From Bigelowiella natans CCMP2755 (lineage: Eukaryota; Protista; Cercozoa): a stretch of DNA of 41,606 bases. Below, piece by piece: positions 29,448 to 36,690 of this stretch. Position numbers and translations under genes: made by a program. Position 1 is the stretch's first letter. Each line of letters starts with the position of its first letter. The notes below the pieces were generated by a model. The model worked only from the letters and a program-made list of their open reading frames with translations, was not told the origin of the DNA and made no database searches. The stretch lies in NCBI GenBank assembly GCA_000320545.1, contig ADNK01002724.1, forward strand, positions 1 to 41,606, written 5' to 3'.

Positions 29448-31256
29448 CTACTGTGCTTCAAGGGAGTCCCGGTTGAAGCATTCGGCTGAATTCGCCCATT
29501 GGTTGATTATTGTGGTTGGTGTATTATCAGGATGCGTAATAAGAAGGTGCTGGTACACCGAGTCCCAGTTTTTGATGAGCGTTGAAAGTGGCACATCATT
29601 CTTTGGAAGGAAAGCTCTATCGATCTTCTCCTTAAACCCAAAGAAGTACTCAATTCTCGCTAGTTCAACATCGGTATTGCTACAAAGTTCTCCAAACTCG
29701 ACATTAAGTACTCTGTAGTCCACAATTTTGTTGAGGAACTTCTCTCGTACTTGCTGCTGTTGCGCGATCCAAGAAATACAATCATCAAAGAATTTTTCAG
29801 GAATAACCCACCCGTCAGTAGAGTATTTTCCAGACTTCCTCTGATATTCCTCAAAAATAGAGTAACAATGGCGAAGTCGATTATATCGTGAGAAACTCAC
29901 AATTTTCACGTCTCGTGATTCCACGTATGCCGCAACGTCATCTTCCCGATCCATTGGAATTTCATTAATCATCCACTCGAATCCCAAATACGCCTTAGGC
30001 ACACCTGGAGGTCCCCTTTAAAAATGAATTCATAATACATTAATGCATAATGTATCAGCAATCAGCAATCAGAAAGTAATATAACATACAACATTGATTT
30101 ACCAGAAAAGCATATCTAAAAGCTCTGCAGATTTGTTTGAGTGCATGTTCACATCCTCAGGAAGGGTGTGCGTTGGGTTCCAAGCTGACACACAATCTGA
30201 TAGTTGTGAATAGGTGGGGAAACAACTGTCTTTGTGTGTTAGAACTACGGAATGGTTGGAGAGAAGGGAGTGCAGCATTTCCTCCCCAGAATTCTGAATG
30301 GAAAGGAGGAAGTATTTGATATAGTATTTTGGAGGTTGCGATTCCACTTCTTGCAGAACCGTGGTATTCGTTTCCCTCTGCTCTTCTTCGTTCTTTGGAG
30401 GTTTACTACTTAAAAATTCAGCTTCATTCATATACTTGAGACCAAGTTCACGAGAGATTGTCTCAAACAAATCTACAGCTTCCTCTACGATTGAATTAAC
30501 CGGTCGTAGGGGATCGGTCACTTCGGATGATTCTTGTTCCTCAAACTCTGTAACTCCTGATGTTGGTTCCACATTAGAGTTTTCACTTTGTATTGCGGAC
30601 AAAGGCGTCGTTGGAATCTGGCTTGCAATAGCTGCTGCTTGCTGGTTAGTAATATTGTGTCCTTCGTCATCACTGCTTTGCTTAAAATCAGTATTAGGAT
30701 CATCTAATTGATCTCTTTGAACTTCAGCAACCATCGAGGGTGATTCAGTATCGTAATCCCAGGGCTCTATCTCTGAAATAGATTCGCTAATATGTGGCTT
30801 GGTCTCGATCCCAGTTTCTCTCACAGAGGCTTCGCTTTCAATATTCTGTTTAGCTCCAACGTCGAACAACTGCAATTGTTCATTTTGAGGCTTGACAATG
30901 GTGCTGTCAATAGACCCACTCTCAACGCCTTCTGTAAGTGAATCAGAGTTCAATTTTTCTTGGTTCACATTAGTGCTTAGCATTAAATTTCTTTTCGAAA
31001 GAACGGTAGGTTCATTGATGAAGGTGTCTTGCATCGCTCGAGATGCAGCAATAGCCTCCTCGGTGGCGTCATCGCCGAGCGGTACTAGAGGAGGAACAGT
31101 TACATTGTGGCTTGATTCAAATTGGAGATAGAAAGGATTTACGTCCTCCATCTTAGTTGCTTCTCTGGGGACACGCATCCATACTCCATGTGCTGGGAAG
31201 CCCAGCAGAATGAGCGTCGCCGCAATTGCCACAGGAAGAGTAGAAACGGGAGCCAT
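29448..31256 (-). CDS. Secretory-pathway protein with acidic S/T/E-rich stalk and C-terminal Stf0/NodH-like sulfotransferase fold (exons 30103-31256, 29448-30015)
   Basis: Signal peptide MAPVSTLPVAIAATLILLGFPAHG. YFLLSIQNSGEEMLHSLLSNH resembles the 5'-PSB RSGS..L..LL..HP motif; also LGFEWM, VKIVSFSRYNRLRHCYS (3'-PB-like), LNVEFGELCSNTDVELARIEYFFG and LSTLIKNWDSV. A phase-2 intron joins the two ORFs. Confidence 0.7.
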
Positions 31257-31569: not shown

Positions 31570-32210
31570 CAGACACAGTGTCATGGCAACAATTTCACGC
31601 CGTGCTAGCGTGGGTCACAGCACCAGAGCTAGCTTTTCGTGTGATCAATCCTCCTTCACACTGAAACAAACAAACACGTTTCTGCAAACATCCCTTTGTT
31701 CTGCCTGGACCTCTGCATCTTGTGTGGAACGTTTTGTCTCCCAGTTTGTCCGGTTGCGTGCACCCTTTTCTCATCGAGGATGCTGTTTGCTCTAGTGCTC
31801 TCTGTCTAGCTGTGTTGTCTAGTTGCGGCACGCAGCTTGCTAGCTTGCACTAGTGCATGCACAATGACATCTGAACAGACAAGCCAAAACACACCAAAAC
31901 ACATTGGCATGCACGTCTGAACATGCACAACACACACGTGCTGGCGCATGCACAATTTTCTGTGAAGTCGACTTCTCTTCCACTCATTGCTGCGGAAAGA
32001 GTCGATGAAGATGCAACACAAAATCAAGCAAGCTAGCAAGTGTGCTTTTCATCAAATTTGACAAAAATGAGAGACCGCAATGAATGCGAGCTTTCCATTG
32101 TTGCCACTGCAAGGCTAGCCTAGATTCCTATTGCTGTACTATCGATAAGACATGCTAATTCATACATAATCCGAATGAATTCCTAAAGGCTAACTTGTTA
32201 GCATGCATTC
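31570..32210. repeat. CTAG/CA-TG-rich degenerate tract between sulfotransferase-like and 7TM genes
   Basis: Same word bias as the other tracts; shares the 13-mer CGTGCTAGCGTGG (31601) with ~18450. Confidence 0.4.
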
Positions 32211-32230
32211 CCAACTTTCAGAGGGACCAC

Positions 32231-33548
32231 TTAGCTGCATAATTTCGGCCAAGGACGCCCATAGATATATAACCAATGGTATGAAACGTAAACCATTATG
32301 GCTCTTGCTACCGTGATACTATTTGGCCAGTTGCTTTCTGCATATATTTTTTCGTTTTCTTCCGAATATTTAGCGGAGCTGTTCAAAGCTTGAAGTCCCA
32401 ATGCTAACAACATAACAAACGCGATCACAGAAGTGGTTCCAAAAAAAATAAGAGTATAAATCAATCTGGAATTTAACGCCGATAGTTTGTTGATCCACAC
32501 CAGATTTCCACCAGTCGGAAGCCGTCTATTGAGATTAGCATTTACATTTTTCAGCCAGTTCTCGTCAACGTCTGCTTTAAATGACTTTTCAATAGGAGCA
32601 GCATGAACTTCGTTTATGTTTTCTGTCGTCACAGCTGAGCTTCCAACATTACGTTTCACATAGGAGGGACTAACTAAACGAGTGCTACTAGCGGTCTTCA
32701 ATGCAGAAGAATTGGAATTTCCTTTTAGGGGCAATTTTAATTCAGTGGTGCTATCAACCCGGGTTTGGGTCTGAGGTTCATGTGTCCTAGACTGGCTCTT
32801 AAGAGTTGATACATGAGAATGAATGTTTGTAATCAAAACGTAGCCTGTGTAGAACCCATATGGAGTAATGTGCAAATGCATAGACGCACAAGCTAGAAAT
32901 TGAATAGCCTCGTATCGTTTTTCATCCGTAATGAGAATAGCTGCAAAATAAAAGGCAGGAAACAAATGTTACGATGTCTTCTTCAAAAAGTCAAAACCAT
33001 TCTTTTATTTTTTACCGATCGTGCCTGCAATAGAAGCTATTATGATGTAGGCAATTGTACCATTAAACACAACTTCAAGATGTCTCGGAAGATGCGCAGT
33101 CATTCTTGCAGTGCCATACATGGTCTGCGTTAAGTTCTTAATGATGTAAATTATTGTAACATACATAGTCCCCTAAATACAAAATAATTATCATTTGACT
33201 GAACAATGTTGCTTATATTTCACGTATCAACCAAAAAGTATCCAGTCATTATTTGTATAAGCTGCCAGGGGCCTCTCGTTGGGCCTCGCGGAAGAAGTAT
33301 TGAGAACAAGATAGCTCCAAACATTAATGATGCAGTACCCCTGTGTGCAGGATGTATGTGACAAATTTATCCCCCACTACATTGCTATGTCATGCGCATG
33401 CATTGTGCGTGAGTCAGAATGATTACCAGAGAATTTTAACTCCTGACGTTCCACTCCAAGCCCCTTTTAGATAGATTTTCCATAGAGTCACTGGTAAGGA
33501 AATGCTGCTTGATACCAAAACGAATGCATCGAATGCAGTGGCCCTCAT
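32231..33548 (-). CDS. Orphan seven-transmembrane (GPCR-topology) protein, 365 aa (exons 33427-33548, 33232-33340, 33016-33172, 32231-32940)
   Basis: Exons total 1098 nt with compatible phases (2,0,1). Seven hydrophobic segments: AFDAFVLVSSSISLPVTLW; ILWGTASLMFGAILFSILL; LIQIMTGYFLGTMYVTIIYII; VVFNGTIAYIIIASIAGTIAILI; AIQFLACASMHLHITPYGFYTGYVLI; LIYTLIFFGTTSVIAFVMLLALGL; SITVARAIMVYVSYHWLYIYG. Long S/T-rich loop between TM5 and TM6. Confidence 0.7.
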
Positions 33549-34046
33549 CGTTGTTCCAAGCTCTTCGATGAGGTCGAACTTTTGCCTGTCGGCGTTCAGA
33601 TGATGCGCAGCTATGATAATGTTACGTGCGACAATTGCTATGATAATGTTACGTGCGACAATTATTTTATGTTGTCGCACTTATTTTGTGCGCTAATTTT
33701 GCGAAATTTGCTGATTAACTGATTGAGACTTGGGTCATGATGACCAACAGGTTTTGATGCTGGCAACTTTTTTCCAGCGGAATGCAGCTTCATCGAACGA
33801 TAACTGTGGCAATTCAAGAAGACGACAACATTTCTGCGCATTTTATCAACTGCTGGGACTTTAGTTGTGTGCAATAGATATGCTTCCTTTACGAAGACAT
33901 CATCCGAACTGTGTCGCACAAGATAATTTCAAGGGAATTTGGCTCATCTCTCGCCGGCTGTGATTAGAAATGTTGTGGTTGTCGCAGTTCTAAAATTGAT
34001 GTGATATTAGTATAAATCGTCGGGTATTAGTGCTGTTTTTCAGGCA
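33549..34046. promoter_or_regulatory. Divergent promoter region shared by the 7TM and G-alpha genes
   Basis: Head-to-head orientation; TGCGACA/TGTCGCA at 33627, 33654, 33673, 33912, 33980. Confidence 0.55.
33610..33663. repeat. Perfect 27-bp tandem duplication GCTATGATAATGTTACGTGCGACAATT x2
   Basis: Read directly at 33610-33636 and 33637-33663. Confidence 0.95.
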
Positions 34047-35821
34047 ATGCGATGTTCGGGAAAAATTGTTAATCATGCACTAAATCGAACAATGGGTCCC
34101 CACCTGGCAAAATTGAATTTTGAATTCCCAAATAGAACGAGCTCTCGAACATGATGGTGTTGTTTTTTTAAACTGTACAGGCGCAGGGTTGGCGCGACGA
34201 AAACCGATTGATGCTAGTGATAGGAGTATCATTAAACATATTAATTCCGTGACGTCCACATCAGAGACTGAGCAGGATGAAAAGATACAGAATCCACTGT
34301 TATACTATAGAGAAAAGGTCCTCATCCTTGGAGCATCCCAATGCGGAAAGTCCACAATCTTTAAACAAATGCTACAGCTCTATGGTACTGAAAAGTTTGG
34401 CGACAACAAATTTGACAGGTCTAGTCTGATCGAGATTCTAGAAGATCATTTCGTTCATTGGTTTAGTTCTCTCCTTAAATACCCTGCAATATTTGCAAAC
34501 ATTCCTAGTGGAAACAAATACGTTGGAACTATTAGTAGAAGGGAGCTGTACGAAGTATTAGTTCCTTTTAAAATGGGAAAGTGCATAGTAAATATCGTAC
34601 ATGAATATGATTGCTGGAGAAGTATTTATCACTTAAGCCCTGAGATGGAAAAGTTGAGCGCTGAAACCCTCGAATGTCTTATGGATATGAAGATGCAATC
34701 GAGTGAGAAGGTGCACCTTTGCAAGAACAAATTAGAGAAATTATGGAATTGTCCAGCCATACAGCACGCCTATGAAAGACAAACGGATCCAGGAATAGCC
34801 GAAACGATGCCATATTTCATGGAGAAAGTTTCAAAGATCTTAAACCCGTCTTATCTGCCTACATTCGAAGATTTTTTGAAAGATTGCACTCGAACTAGTG
34901 GACTAGTAGAGGCCAGAATTAGAGATGGCGACATCGAATACGTGACATTCGATTTAGGTGGTGCACGAAGTGAGCGCCGGAAATGGATCCATTGGTAACG
35001 CTAGTTTTTCACATAGTTGCTTCTGCTTATCAAATTGGAAAGATATTACGAATGAATAATCACTCCTCTTAATATTTAAGTGTTTCAGATACTTCGTACA
35101 TAATATTTGTTTCGGCTATTAGTGCATACAATCGGGTTACAGCATTGCTTGCCTTTACATAGCATACTACAAATATGGCTTACTAATTAATACTATTTAG
35201 ACTCTGTTTGAAGACACAAATTCGAATTCGCTCGTAGAGGTTCCAAAAAGTGCTTGTTTGGCGGTATTTGACTAAGATGTCCTTTTTACAGGATATAGAT
35301 CTTTTTTCTGATGTGATCGGTAGCCCTTGGAGTCAAAATGTGCAAGTAATGCTAGTTTTAAATAAGATTGACATATTCAAGGAAAAAATTAAAAGGTAAG
35401 TAGTTGAGAAATGAAACATTGATATTCAAAAACTATGCAGCAACAAATAGTGAGTATTGTAATTCCCAGGGTTCCCATTACAGTGTGTCCCGCCTTGAAA
35501 GGTTATAAAGGGATTCAAACAGGTTAGTAAAAATCTATTATATATTTCTCACACATTACCGCACATTATAAACTGTACATGCTCAGCGGTGTATGCTTTT
35601 ATGCTAAGATTACGAGGCATCATTGCAACATATCAAGGAAAGATTCTTAGAAGTGGCGATGAAATGGGTTCTCCTTTTATTTCATCACCCATTATCAAAA
35701 CTTCAGTTGTTCTCATAATATTTAACAGGATCGAAACTGTGCTCAAAGAATTAAATTAGTTACATTGTGTTCTTTCGATTCGAAAGCCGTTAAGGATGCT
35801 TTTGAATCTTTGCGCAGATGA
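34047..35821 (+). CDS. Heterotrimeric G-protein alpha subunit, catalytically divergent; 5' end uncertain (exons ...-34994, 35081-35135, 35201-35239, 35292-35395, 35470-35522, 35609-35667, 35729-35821)
   Basis: KVLILGASQCGKSTIFKQM, LWNCPAIQHAYER, YLPTFEDFLKDCTRTSGLVE, FDLGGARSERRKWIHC, IIFVSAISAYNRTLFED, LVLNKIDIFKEKI, LCSFDS; six phase-consistent GT-AG introns; stop at 35819-35821. Confidence 0.92.
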
Positions 35822-35929
35822 GATTCACTTGAAGACCCATCAGAAATCAGAACCACATATAAGTGAGAGGTTCGCTCTGCTACATACATTCATTAAATTT
35901 ATCTATTGTATGGATTTGCATTTAATACA

Positions 35930-36690
35930 GCAAGCTTGACATTTGTCATTACTAGATTACATTGCTCGTCAAAGTTACTAAATTAATCAGGCTCAATTGT
36001 AGACATCCACGCACAAACTTTGGGCTTGGCAATTGACACAGCTTCTTGCCACTTGTCACATGTCTAGATCGTCTAGTCTCTAGAGCTAGCTAGAAGGTGA
36101 TGCTGTGTTGTGATGCAGTCTACCAAAATTGGGCTGACAGCTGTGTGAATTAGATTTCTTCGCGCACTTGCCTCTAGATGTGTCTAAGTGTCTAGAGTGC
36201 GCTTAAATTCAATTTGCATCACATCAATCCGTGGATGACTAGATGATTGTAGACCGAACGCAGAGCTCCGCATGGATCACAGCGGCTACGCTAGTTTTCA
36301 CTGAGCAACATTCTAGCATTGAACATTGCTAGATTGCTAGAACAAATGAGCGAGGCTAGGCGTCACTAGCTAGCTAGGTCAATCGAGCACGGCAAAATTT
36401 AGATGTGGATTTCGATCTACTACAACACGACACAACCAACAAACCGTGCTACAAATGAATAATGAATGCAATGCACTGCTATTAGACAACATGCACAGCT
36501 AGACAGCATGCTAGCATGCACGTTGCTAGCAGCTAGGTTGTTGTTGCATTTGTCTAGTCTGTCATCAATATCGTACATTGACATGTAGCCTTTACCATGC
36601 CTCAAATGTGTTGGAAACTTAGTTGTAATGCATTATCTACGCTGGTACGGTTGACTGCCTTACGGCTAGCAGTGTGTTCATCTCTAGATC
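35930..36690. repeat. CTAG-rich degenerate tract
   Basis: Dense tctaga/gctagc words (36062-36095, 36355-36378, 36498-36537); non-coding region between convergent genes. Confidence 0.45.

Follow-up and report, generated by a model that had tools for sequence, protein, structure and literature searches.

In this work we describe an unusual alpha subunit of a G protein (G-alpha), encoded in a 41,606-nucleotide stretch of Bigelowiella natans CCMP2755 DNA (GenBank assembly GCA_000320545.1, contig ADNK01002724.1, positions 1 to 41,606 of the forward strand), which as a whole is called here the window. The G-alpha gene occupies positions 34092-35821 of the plus strand, and its eight exons give on splicing a stop-free frame of 406 amino acids. 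The encoded protein carries neither the catalytic arginine (Arg178 of G-alpha i1, whose numbering is used throughout) nor the catalytic glutamine (Gln204), and it has kept the motifs which serve for nucleotide binding. On balance we favour the view that it is an expressed, lineage-restricted G-alpha paralogue which would bind GTP, would be unable to hydrolyse it and would be uncoupled from receptors. This reading is supported by the predicted protein, by its expression and by its evolution, and the protein probably signals outside the usual receptor-driven on/off cycle.

G-alpha is the textbook example of a timed molecular switch, in which the timer is the GTPase activity that depends on Arg178 and Gln204. 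The same substitutions, when they arise somatically, drive human tumours and McCune-Albright syndrome. A preliminary description of the window, prepared from the DNA letters, had listed a full set of naturally occurring activating substitutions, and its residue assignments were confirmed in the present analysis. The catalytic Arg178 is replaced by Cys (TGC, 34885-34887) and the catalytic Gln204 by Ala (GCA, 34963-34965). The P-loop GAGES is changed to GASQC (G42S and E43Q, codons within 34330-34356), and Arg242 to Ser in the motif NSL (TCG, 35228-35230). In the G5 motif TCAT is changed to LCSF (TTG TGT TCT TTC, 35765-35776), where the Cys is kept, Ala326 is replaced by Ser and, additionally, Thr327 by Phe. 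All three members of the Glu43-Arg178-Arg242 lock, which closes over the nucleotide, are thus substituted (by Gln, Cys and Ser, respectively), and a different residue is found at every position of the canonical catalytic set, composed of the Arg finger, the catalytic Gln and Gly42, the counterpart of Ras Gly12, together with the ionic lock. Intact are, as was also stated before, GKST, the switch I threonine (Thr181), DxxG and NKxD; Gly183 and Arg205 are retained as well.

These equivalences do not depend on a single alignment. Residues 184-270 of exon 2 were aligned by phmmer without any gap, over 87 residues, to residues 127-213 of the solved G-alpha i1 (1agr_A and others), which places C235 on Arg178 and A261 on Gln204. 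The best-scoring chain of the PDB was the G-alpha q(R183C) mutant (4ekc_A/4ekd_A), whose engineered Cys aligns with the natural Cys of the window protein. MAFFT alignments of 6 and of 84 G-alphas agreed on the residue equivalences, and in the latter the G42, S44, R178 and Q204 columns are at least 90% conserved, the window protein deviating at all four. For the searches against Pfam, PDB, homologues and folds exon 2 or other single exons were used; exon 2 alone matched the G-alpha family PF00503 with 114 bits (E 1e-32, cut-off 48.8) and exon 5 alone with 36.5 bits (E 4e-9). It had been suggested earlier that the nearby Arg of the CTRT motif could substitute for the missing one, and this idea turned out to be weak: the residue occupies the Lys180 position, where, in a sample of 159 G-alphas, 116 have Arg. 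Because Arg is the family norm at this place, also in G-alphas which have Arg178, it does not count as a compensating change.

The RNA evidence was obtained from three contig sets (X1, X2 and X4) and one raw RNA run, placed on positions 31800-36400, and was used together with L013, a transcript contig of a related species described below. In the preliminary description G-alpha was located at 34300-35790. The G-alpha residues are indeed encoded there, although the region is not continuously coding and spans exons 2-8 together with six introns. Most of the protein is encoded by one open frame (34120-34998, 292 codons) and the remainder by small downstream exons; the seven introns are all of the GT..AG type and 52-86 nucleotides long. 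The features of the gene are as follows (a slash separates the two bases joined by splicing).

34092..34095, plus strand: predicted end of exon 1; ATG and the first base of codon 2 (Gly)
34096..34180, plus strand: intron 1, 85 nucleotides, GT..AG; donor predicted, acceptor supported
34181..34994, plus strand: exon 2; encodes the N-terminal helix and beta1, the P-loop, the complete helical domain including an insert specific to the lineage, and both switches (I and II)
34330-34356, plus strand: P-loop GASQCGKST in exon 2; codons GGA GCA TCC CAA TGC GGA AAG TCC ACA
34885-87 (Cys), 34894-96 (Thr) and 34900-02 (Gly), plus strand: switch I in exon 2
34951-34968, plus strand: switch II DLGGAR in exon 2, with Ala at 34963-65
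34995..35080, plus strand: intron 2, 86 nucleotides; joint 34994/35081 in X2 and X4, removed also in the orthologue transcript L013
35081..35135, plus strand: exon 3, 55 nucleotides; finishes the Cys of RKWIHC, then VSDTSYIIFVSAISAYNR (beta4 region)
35201..35239, plus strand: exon 4, TLFEDTNSNSLVE; joints 35135/35201 and 35239/35292; Ser at the Arg242 position, 35228-35230
35292..35395, plus strand: exon 5, alpha3/beta5; intact G4 motif NKID at 35361-35372
35470..35522, plus strand: exon 6, (R)VPITVCPALKGYKGIQT; joints 35395/35470 and 35522/35609 in X1, X2 and X4
35609..35667, plus strand: exon 7, DYEASLQHIKERFLEVAMKW (alpha4 region); joints 35522/35609 and 35667/35729 in X1, X2 and X4
35729..35821, plus strand: exon 8; beta6, G5 motif LCSF at 35765-35776, shortened alpha5 (SKAVKDAFESLRR), stop codon TGA at 35819-35821
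35822..36104, plus strand: 3' untranslated region, approximate extent; covered by RNA contigs to 36009-36104

Exon 1 was inferred because exon 2 starts in phase 1 and has no in-frame ATG upstream of the P-loop. The sequence ATGG/GT at 34092-97, combined with the acceptor at 34180, gives an 85-nucleotide GT-AG intron and a protein starting with MG; the predicted N-terminus, MGAGLARRKP, would carry a Met-Gly lipidation site and depends on this 4-nucleotide coding end of exon 1. The acceptor is supported by contigs of X1 and X4, which begin exactly at 34180, and by the conservation of CAG/GCGCAGGG in L013. Unspliced RNA contigs start at 34093 in X2 and, in the orthologue, at the position corresponding to 34098, which fits an assembly branch point. 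The apparent end of the frame at 34993-34998, read as RKWIHW-stop, was rejected, as it is really the donor site of exon 2, and the spliced protein continues as RKWIHC. Intron 2 read in another frame (VTLVFHIVASAYQ...) resembles the beta4 region of G-alpha; this resemblance was taken as chance because no Pfam hit was obtained. The public protein model of the window gene is a fragment of 279 amino acids, and the corrected model of 406 amino acids is useful in itself.

The stretch was found in 20 public sequencing runs coming from 7 studies, with 13-74% of the sampled words present, which is about what spliced RNA would give. The six downstream introns were seen in RNA exactly as modelled (34994/35081, 35135/35201, 35239/35292, 35395/35470, 35522/35609 and 35667/35729), so transcripts, which had been named as a test of the gene's reality, exist and are spliced. 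In three runs RNA contigs cover 34180-34994 without a single letter differing from the genome, and the Cys and Ala codons are therefore confirmed in RNA of independent studies. Since the RNA contigs are identical to the genome there, and an orthologue carries the same residues, the unusual residues are not sequencing errors. From 35728 the RNA contigs continue without splicing past the TGA at 35819-21 to 35994-36009, and none is spliced beyond the stop; for this reason the short C-terminus is considered real. Unproductive forms are present as well: retention of intron 2, which leads to WIHW-stop, was observed in X1, X2 and X4 (unspliced contigs 34965-35109 and 34965-35229), and X1 and X2 contain a joint that skips exon 3 and breaks the frame (34994/35201); the assembled contigs of X1 include no productive joint for intron 2.

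Several differences between the RNA contigs and the genome were noticed along the gene. At 35308 X1 has G in place of C, which changes Ser to Cys in exon 5 (DIDLFSD) and is likely a strain polymorphism; two further differences are non-coding, at 35054 (intron 2) and at 35939 (3' untranslated region). The 3' end of the gene is flanked by CTAG-rich tracts at 36060-36104 and 36290-36380, and contigs of X2 and X4 depart from the genome sequence at 36104 (continuing as AGCATGCTAGCATGCTAGCATGTC) and at 36341, which suggests a variable repeat or an assembly difference.

Among 5.8 billion clustered proteins only two close relatives of the window protein were found, P0001 and P0002. P0001 (UniParc UPI00043FAD1E, 279 amino acids) is identical to the window gene product apart from a 41-amino-acid gap, and is devoid of the N-terminus and of exons 6-8; evidently it is the public, fragmentary model of the same gene. 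Its gap corresponds to an in-frame GT..AG 'intron' of 123 nucleotides (34523-34645), which was not counted as an isoform because this splice is absent from the RNA contigs; the orthologue has conserved this segment as part of its coding sequence. P0002, with 79% amino acid identity over the called open reading frame, is encoded on L013, a 2,014-nucleotide contig of a metatranscriptome of the Joint Genome Institute, whose exon 2 is 83% identical at the nucleotide level. L013 represents an incompletely spliced transcript from a related species, with introns 2, 3 and 6 removed and the others retained. The exon 3 junctions seen in RNA match those in both P0001 and L013. The coding sequence reconstructed from L013 is open and contains GASQC, DCTRTSG, DLGGAR, NSL, LCSF and the short C-terminus, so that a search for disablements in the orthologue gave none and every unusual residue is kept.

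Comparison of the two coding sequences by the Nei-Gojobori method over 404 codons gave a ratio of nonsynonymous to synonymous substitution rates (dN/dS) of 0.21 at dS 0.52, far from the value near 1 that had been proposed as the mark of a decaying pseudogene. By block, dN/dS is 0.08 for the P-loop, 0.08 for switch I/II and 0.14 for the C-terminal third. Five of the unusual residues have a changed codon in the orthologue with no change of amino acid (Ser TCC/TCT, Cys TGC/TGT twice, Ala GCA/GCG and Ser TCG/TCA), and therefore selection holds these very residues. A rate baseline was sought in C2424, an intronless canonical G-alpha paralogue which is 100% identical to the EukProt entry jgi/Bigna1/54056, in accordance with the B. 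natans origin of the genome. No such baseline was obtained, as the closest relative of C2424 from any other organism shares only 57% identity. Further orthologues were sought by a metagenome scan with the alignment of exon 2 and P0002, in which none of the 593 pattern matches was confirmed. In an exhaustive HMMER search of 1.84 billion cluster representatives the gene's own cluster alone fell below E 1e-30, the next one scoring 94 bits, and the gene is therefore confined to a small lineage.

About 30 G-alpha loci were found in the B. natans genome (91 Mb in 3,736 contigs), for which a lineage-specific G-alpha diversification and a very large signalling repertoire have been reported (PMC3971589). 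The window gene has no close paralogue among them, the best match in its own genome reaching 41% identity over 85 amino acids. Of the 27 loci in which both sites can be read, it alone carries neither Arg178 nor Gln204. Single replacements do occur: Arg178 is changed to Ser at the C3601 locus (L002, G000:C3601:158758-159705), together with Glu43 to Ser and Arg205 to Glu, and to Lys at the C1936 locus (L034), and at the C2583 locus (L037, G000:C2583:37617-38820) Gln204 is changed to Met, the P-loop reads GCGGSGKTT and the Arg178 position is unreadable. Approximately 13 loci are devoid of the P-loop Glu43; variation of the P-loop is therefore common in the family. In the switch region the window protein is 39% identical to the canonical reference, and its B. 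natans paralogues are 25-55% identical; lying in the middle of this range, the gene is no outlier in overall divergence.

Of the 150 closest representatives worldwide, roughly one in eight has lost one of the two catalytic residues, and both are missing, besides the window cluster, only in P0157 and P0065, two unrelated metagenomic or protist G-alphas. P0157 (Ser and Ala) is also without NKxD, and P0065 has Cys and Ser. A separate case is that of the rhizarian Leptophrys vorax protein P0045 and its relative P0131, in which Gln204 is changed to Ala and NKxD is replaced by TKxD.

The distance from GKST to switch I amounts to about 175 residues, and the structural model shows helices over residues 76-233 followed by beta2/beta3, as expected for an inserted helical domain; the alignments with other G-alphas extend across this region. 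The AlphaFold model of exon 2 (predicted local distance difference test score, pLDDT, 74) is confident for beta1/P-loop/alpha1, for most of the helical domain and for switch I/II, and is poor at the N-terminus. The best PDB matches by sequence, like the best fold matches of this model, were all G-alpha chains, the closest in fold being AtGPA1 (template modelling score, TM, 0.58). At the other end of the protein the tail beyond the G5 Asp has 13 amino acids, and 15 in the orthologue, in comparison with 25-27 in 56 of 72 representatives. It follows that the exposed, receptor-contacting C-terminal half of alpha5 is missing, according to the sequences of both species; in the window protein the last 13 residues of this helix are lost.

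The positions changed in the window protein are those known from GTPase-deficient G-alpha mutants (Gs R201C/Q227L, Gq R183C/Q209L, and Gi1 R178C, Q204L, G42V and A326S). Hydrolysis is abolished by R178C and by Q204R and lowered by G42V (bioRxiv 10.1101/795088), and solved structures exist for G-alpha i1 with G42V (1as2) and A326S (1bh2). The match is exact for the Arg finger changed to Cys (G-alpha q R183C) and for the G5 Ala changed to Ser (1bh2). The oncogenic and engineered mutants, however, each carry one change, somatic or made in the laboratory, in a protein coupled to receptors, whereas the window protein combines five or six such changes as its wild type, under purifying selection in two species, and has a truncated alpha5. 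The plant extra-large G proteins XLG1-3 resemble it in being natural, in having neither the catalytic Arg nor Gln and in the replacement of G42 and A326 (10.1101/795088). The XLGs have moreover lost Lys46 and DVGG, possess a long Cys-rich N-terminal extension and bind nucleotides 100-1000 times more weakly (10.1101/795088); the window protein, in contrast, has all binding motifs, no extension, and is related to them at the family level only.

Closest in the P-loop is Naegleria fowleri G-alpha 1, where the G42/E43 positions are likewise replaced (AQ in place of the SQ of the window protein). Its natural TAQ P-loop (GTAQSGKS) was shown experimentally to cause slower hydrolysis, faster activation and abolition of the action of RGS proteins (PMC9283941). 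In bikonts G-alphas as a rule exchange nucleotide with no need of a receptor, and self-activation is common among them (PMC3865004). N. fowleri G-alpha 1, AtGPA1 and TvG-alpha 5 nevertheless keep Arg178 and Gln204 and hydrolyse GTP slowly, and the window protein has neither catalytic residue and no alpha5 tail. Catalytically stripped G-alphas are thus already known, and what is new here, by sequence, is that the binding site is kept, unlike in the XLGs, and that both catalytic residues and the alpha5 tail are lost, unlike in the self-activating protist G-alphas.

The preliminary description had proposed a GTP-locked or pseudo-GTPase G-alpha; sequence, RNA and evolution agree with a protein of one or the other kind. 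In the mechanism that we put forward, a protein without the ionic lock and with the A326S-type change in G5 would exchange its nucleotide spontaneously, and without Arg178, Gln204 and Gly42 the bound GTP would stay unhydrolysed. RGS proteins would be of no help, because they act by positioning Gln204, which is Ala here, and no seven-transmembrane receptor could drive the exchange, because the alpha5 tail is missing. The protein would then be present mostly in the GTP form, with no return to G-beta-gamma, and would offer its conserved switch II face (RSERRKWIHC) to a putative effector. The output would be set by abundance, that is by transcription, heavy unproductive splicing, turnover or localisation. 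Such a working logic would be akin to that of the atypical small GTPases Rnd1-3 and RhoH, which are constitutively GTP-bound, have intact binding motifs and substituted G12- and Q61-type positions, and whose activity is set by expression, localisation and turnover. The likeness concerns the working logic only, since Rnd and RhoH belong to the Rho family, have no helical domain and had no intrinsic Arg finger to lose. More tentatively, and with less confidence than we place in the general reading, this G-alpha may stand fully outside the heterotrimer cycle: loading GTP spontaneously, not hydrolysing it, blind to receptors and RGS proteins and always on, with its dose set by transcription, by regulated unproductive splicing (intron 2 retention and exon 3 skipping) and by turnover. 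It would then be the first G-alpha of the Rnd/RhoH type, kept by selection in chlorarachniophytes.

A number of observations weigh against the GTP-locked reading. The loss of the lock, A326S, T327F and the short alpha5 could lower the affinity for nucleotide to such a degree that the protein is largely empty. Retention of intron 2 or skipping of exon 3 accounts, in three runs, for about 60-100% of the k-mer depth at the junction. The family score and the fold come from single exons and not from the joined protein of 406 amino acids, the 40-residue lineage-specific insert (residues 110-148) is modelled with low confidence, and exon 1 with its MG start is a prediction whose joint does not appear in the RNA contigs. 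Sequence change is faster in the helical domain (dN/dS 0.33) than in the other blocks, and the constraint comes from one pairwise comparison, because the gene is known in two species only.

The first of these points leads to the explanation that the protein is a nucleotide-free or very low-affinity 'decoy' G-alpha, like plant XLG; it would retain the fold and, independently of nucleotide, bind G-beta-gamma, RGS proteins or effectors as a scaffold or sink. We consider this explanation rather unlikely. In its favour stand the complete loss of the Glu43-Arg178-Arg242 lock, the Ser at the G42 position, the G5 motif LCSF (A326S and T327F) and the absence of the C-terminal half of alpha5, which is mechanically coupled to the guanine pocket. 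XLG2, devoid of the catalytic Arg and Gln, can work without nucleotide, but it has additionally lost Lys46, DVGG and other binding residues (10.1101/795088). In the window protein, on the other hand, GKST, Thr181, DxxG and NKxD remain intact within blocks whose dN/dS is 0.08-0.14, which would be hard to explain without nucleotide binding, and the changes Gly to Ser, Arg to Cys and Gln to Ala are small and compatible with the pocket, whereas XLG shows charge reversals. Decay of the gene into a pseudogene or a transcribed relic, within a large family of fast turnover, appears highly improbable to us. The family of about 30 members with several odd P-loops, the abundant intron retention and frame-breaking exon 3 skipping, and the fragmentary public model (P0001) would fit such a fate. 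All eight exons are however open and flanked by canonical splice sites, as the orthologue is open too; productive joints are present in RNA, dN/dS is 0.21 at dS 0.52, and the unusual residues were preserved through synonymous changes. We regard the pseudogene explanation as refuted because of this open frame, the productive RNA joints, the low dN/dS and the synonymous retention of the residues.

An unlikely explanation, in our estimate, is also that of a true switch, in which hydrolysis would be provided in trans by a dedicated GTPase-activating protein (GAP) supplying an Arg finger and/or a catalytic Asn/Gln, or would proceed as a slow residual timer. Precedents exist among small GTPases: Rap, which has no catalytic Gln, and Ras, which has no intrinsic Arg, are both switched off in this manner, by RapGAP and RasGAP. 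The strictly conserved switches I and II would fit an interface for a GAP as well as for an effector, and the B. natans genome, with at least eight RGS-domain loci and a very large signalling repertoire (PMC3971589), could contain such a partner. No candidate GAP was identified, though, and known RGS domains act through Gln204, which in the window protein is Ala. The TAQ P-loop alone made N. fowleri G-alpha 1 insensitive to RGS (PMC9283941). An inserted Arg finger would moreover be obstructed by the Ser at the G12-type position, as the Ras G12 mutants suggest.

Two observations concern the surroundings of the gene and of the family. Upstream of the window gene, in head-to-head orientation, minus-strand open reading frames at 32231-33919 encode hydrophobic segments and are covered by few raw RNA reads; no Pfam family was found for them, nor for the open reading frames at 29451-31256. 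Elsewhere in the genome a match to the RGS domain and one to G-alpha occur some 2 kb apart and on the same strand (G000:C2963:103411-107651, minus strand).

To our knowledge, natural G-alphas without a timer were previously known only from the plant XLGs, in which nucleotide binding is largely lost. If the GTP-locked reading is true, a G-alpha can evolve into a constitutive signal controlled by its dose and be kept under strong purifying selection. The protein would then offer a natural scaffold for studies of the residues that suffice to lock GTP in place and of the partners that recognise a switch II which is always active. The gene moreover provides a concrete case, amenable to testing, for the view that G-protein signalling in bikonts is not driven by receptors (PMC3865004; PMC3971589).

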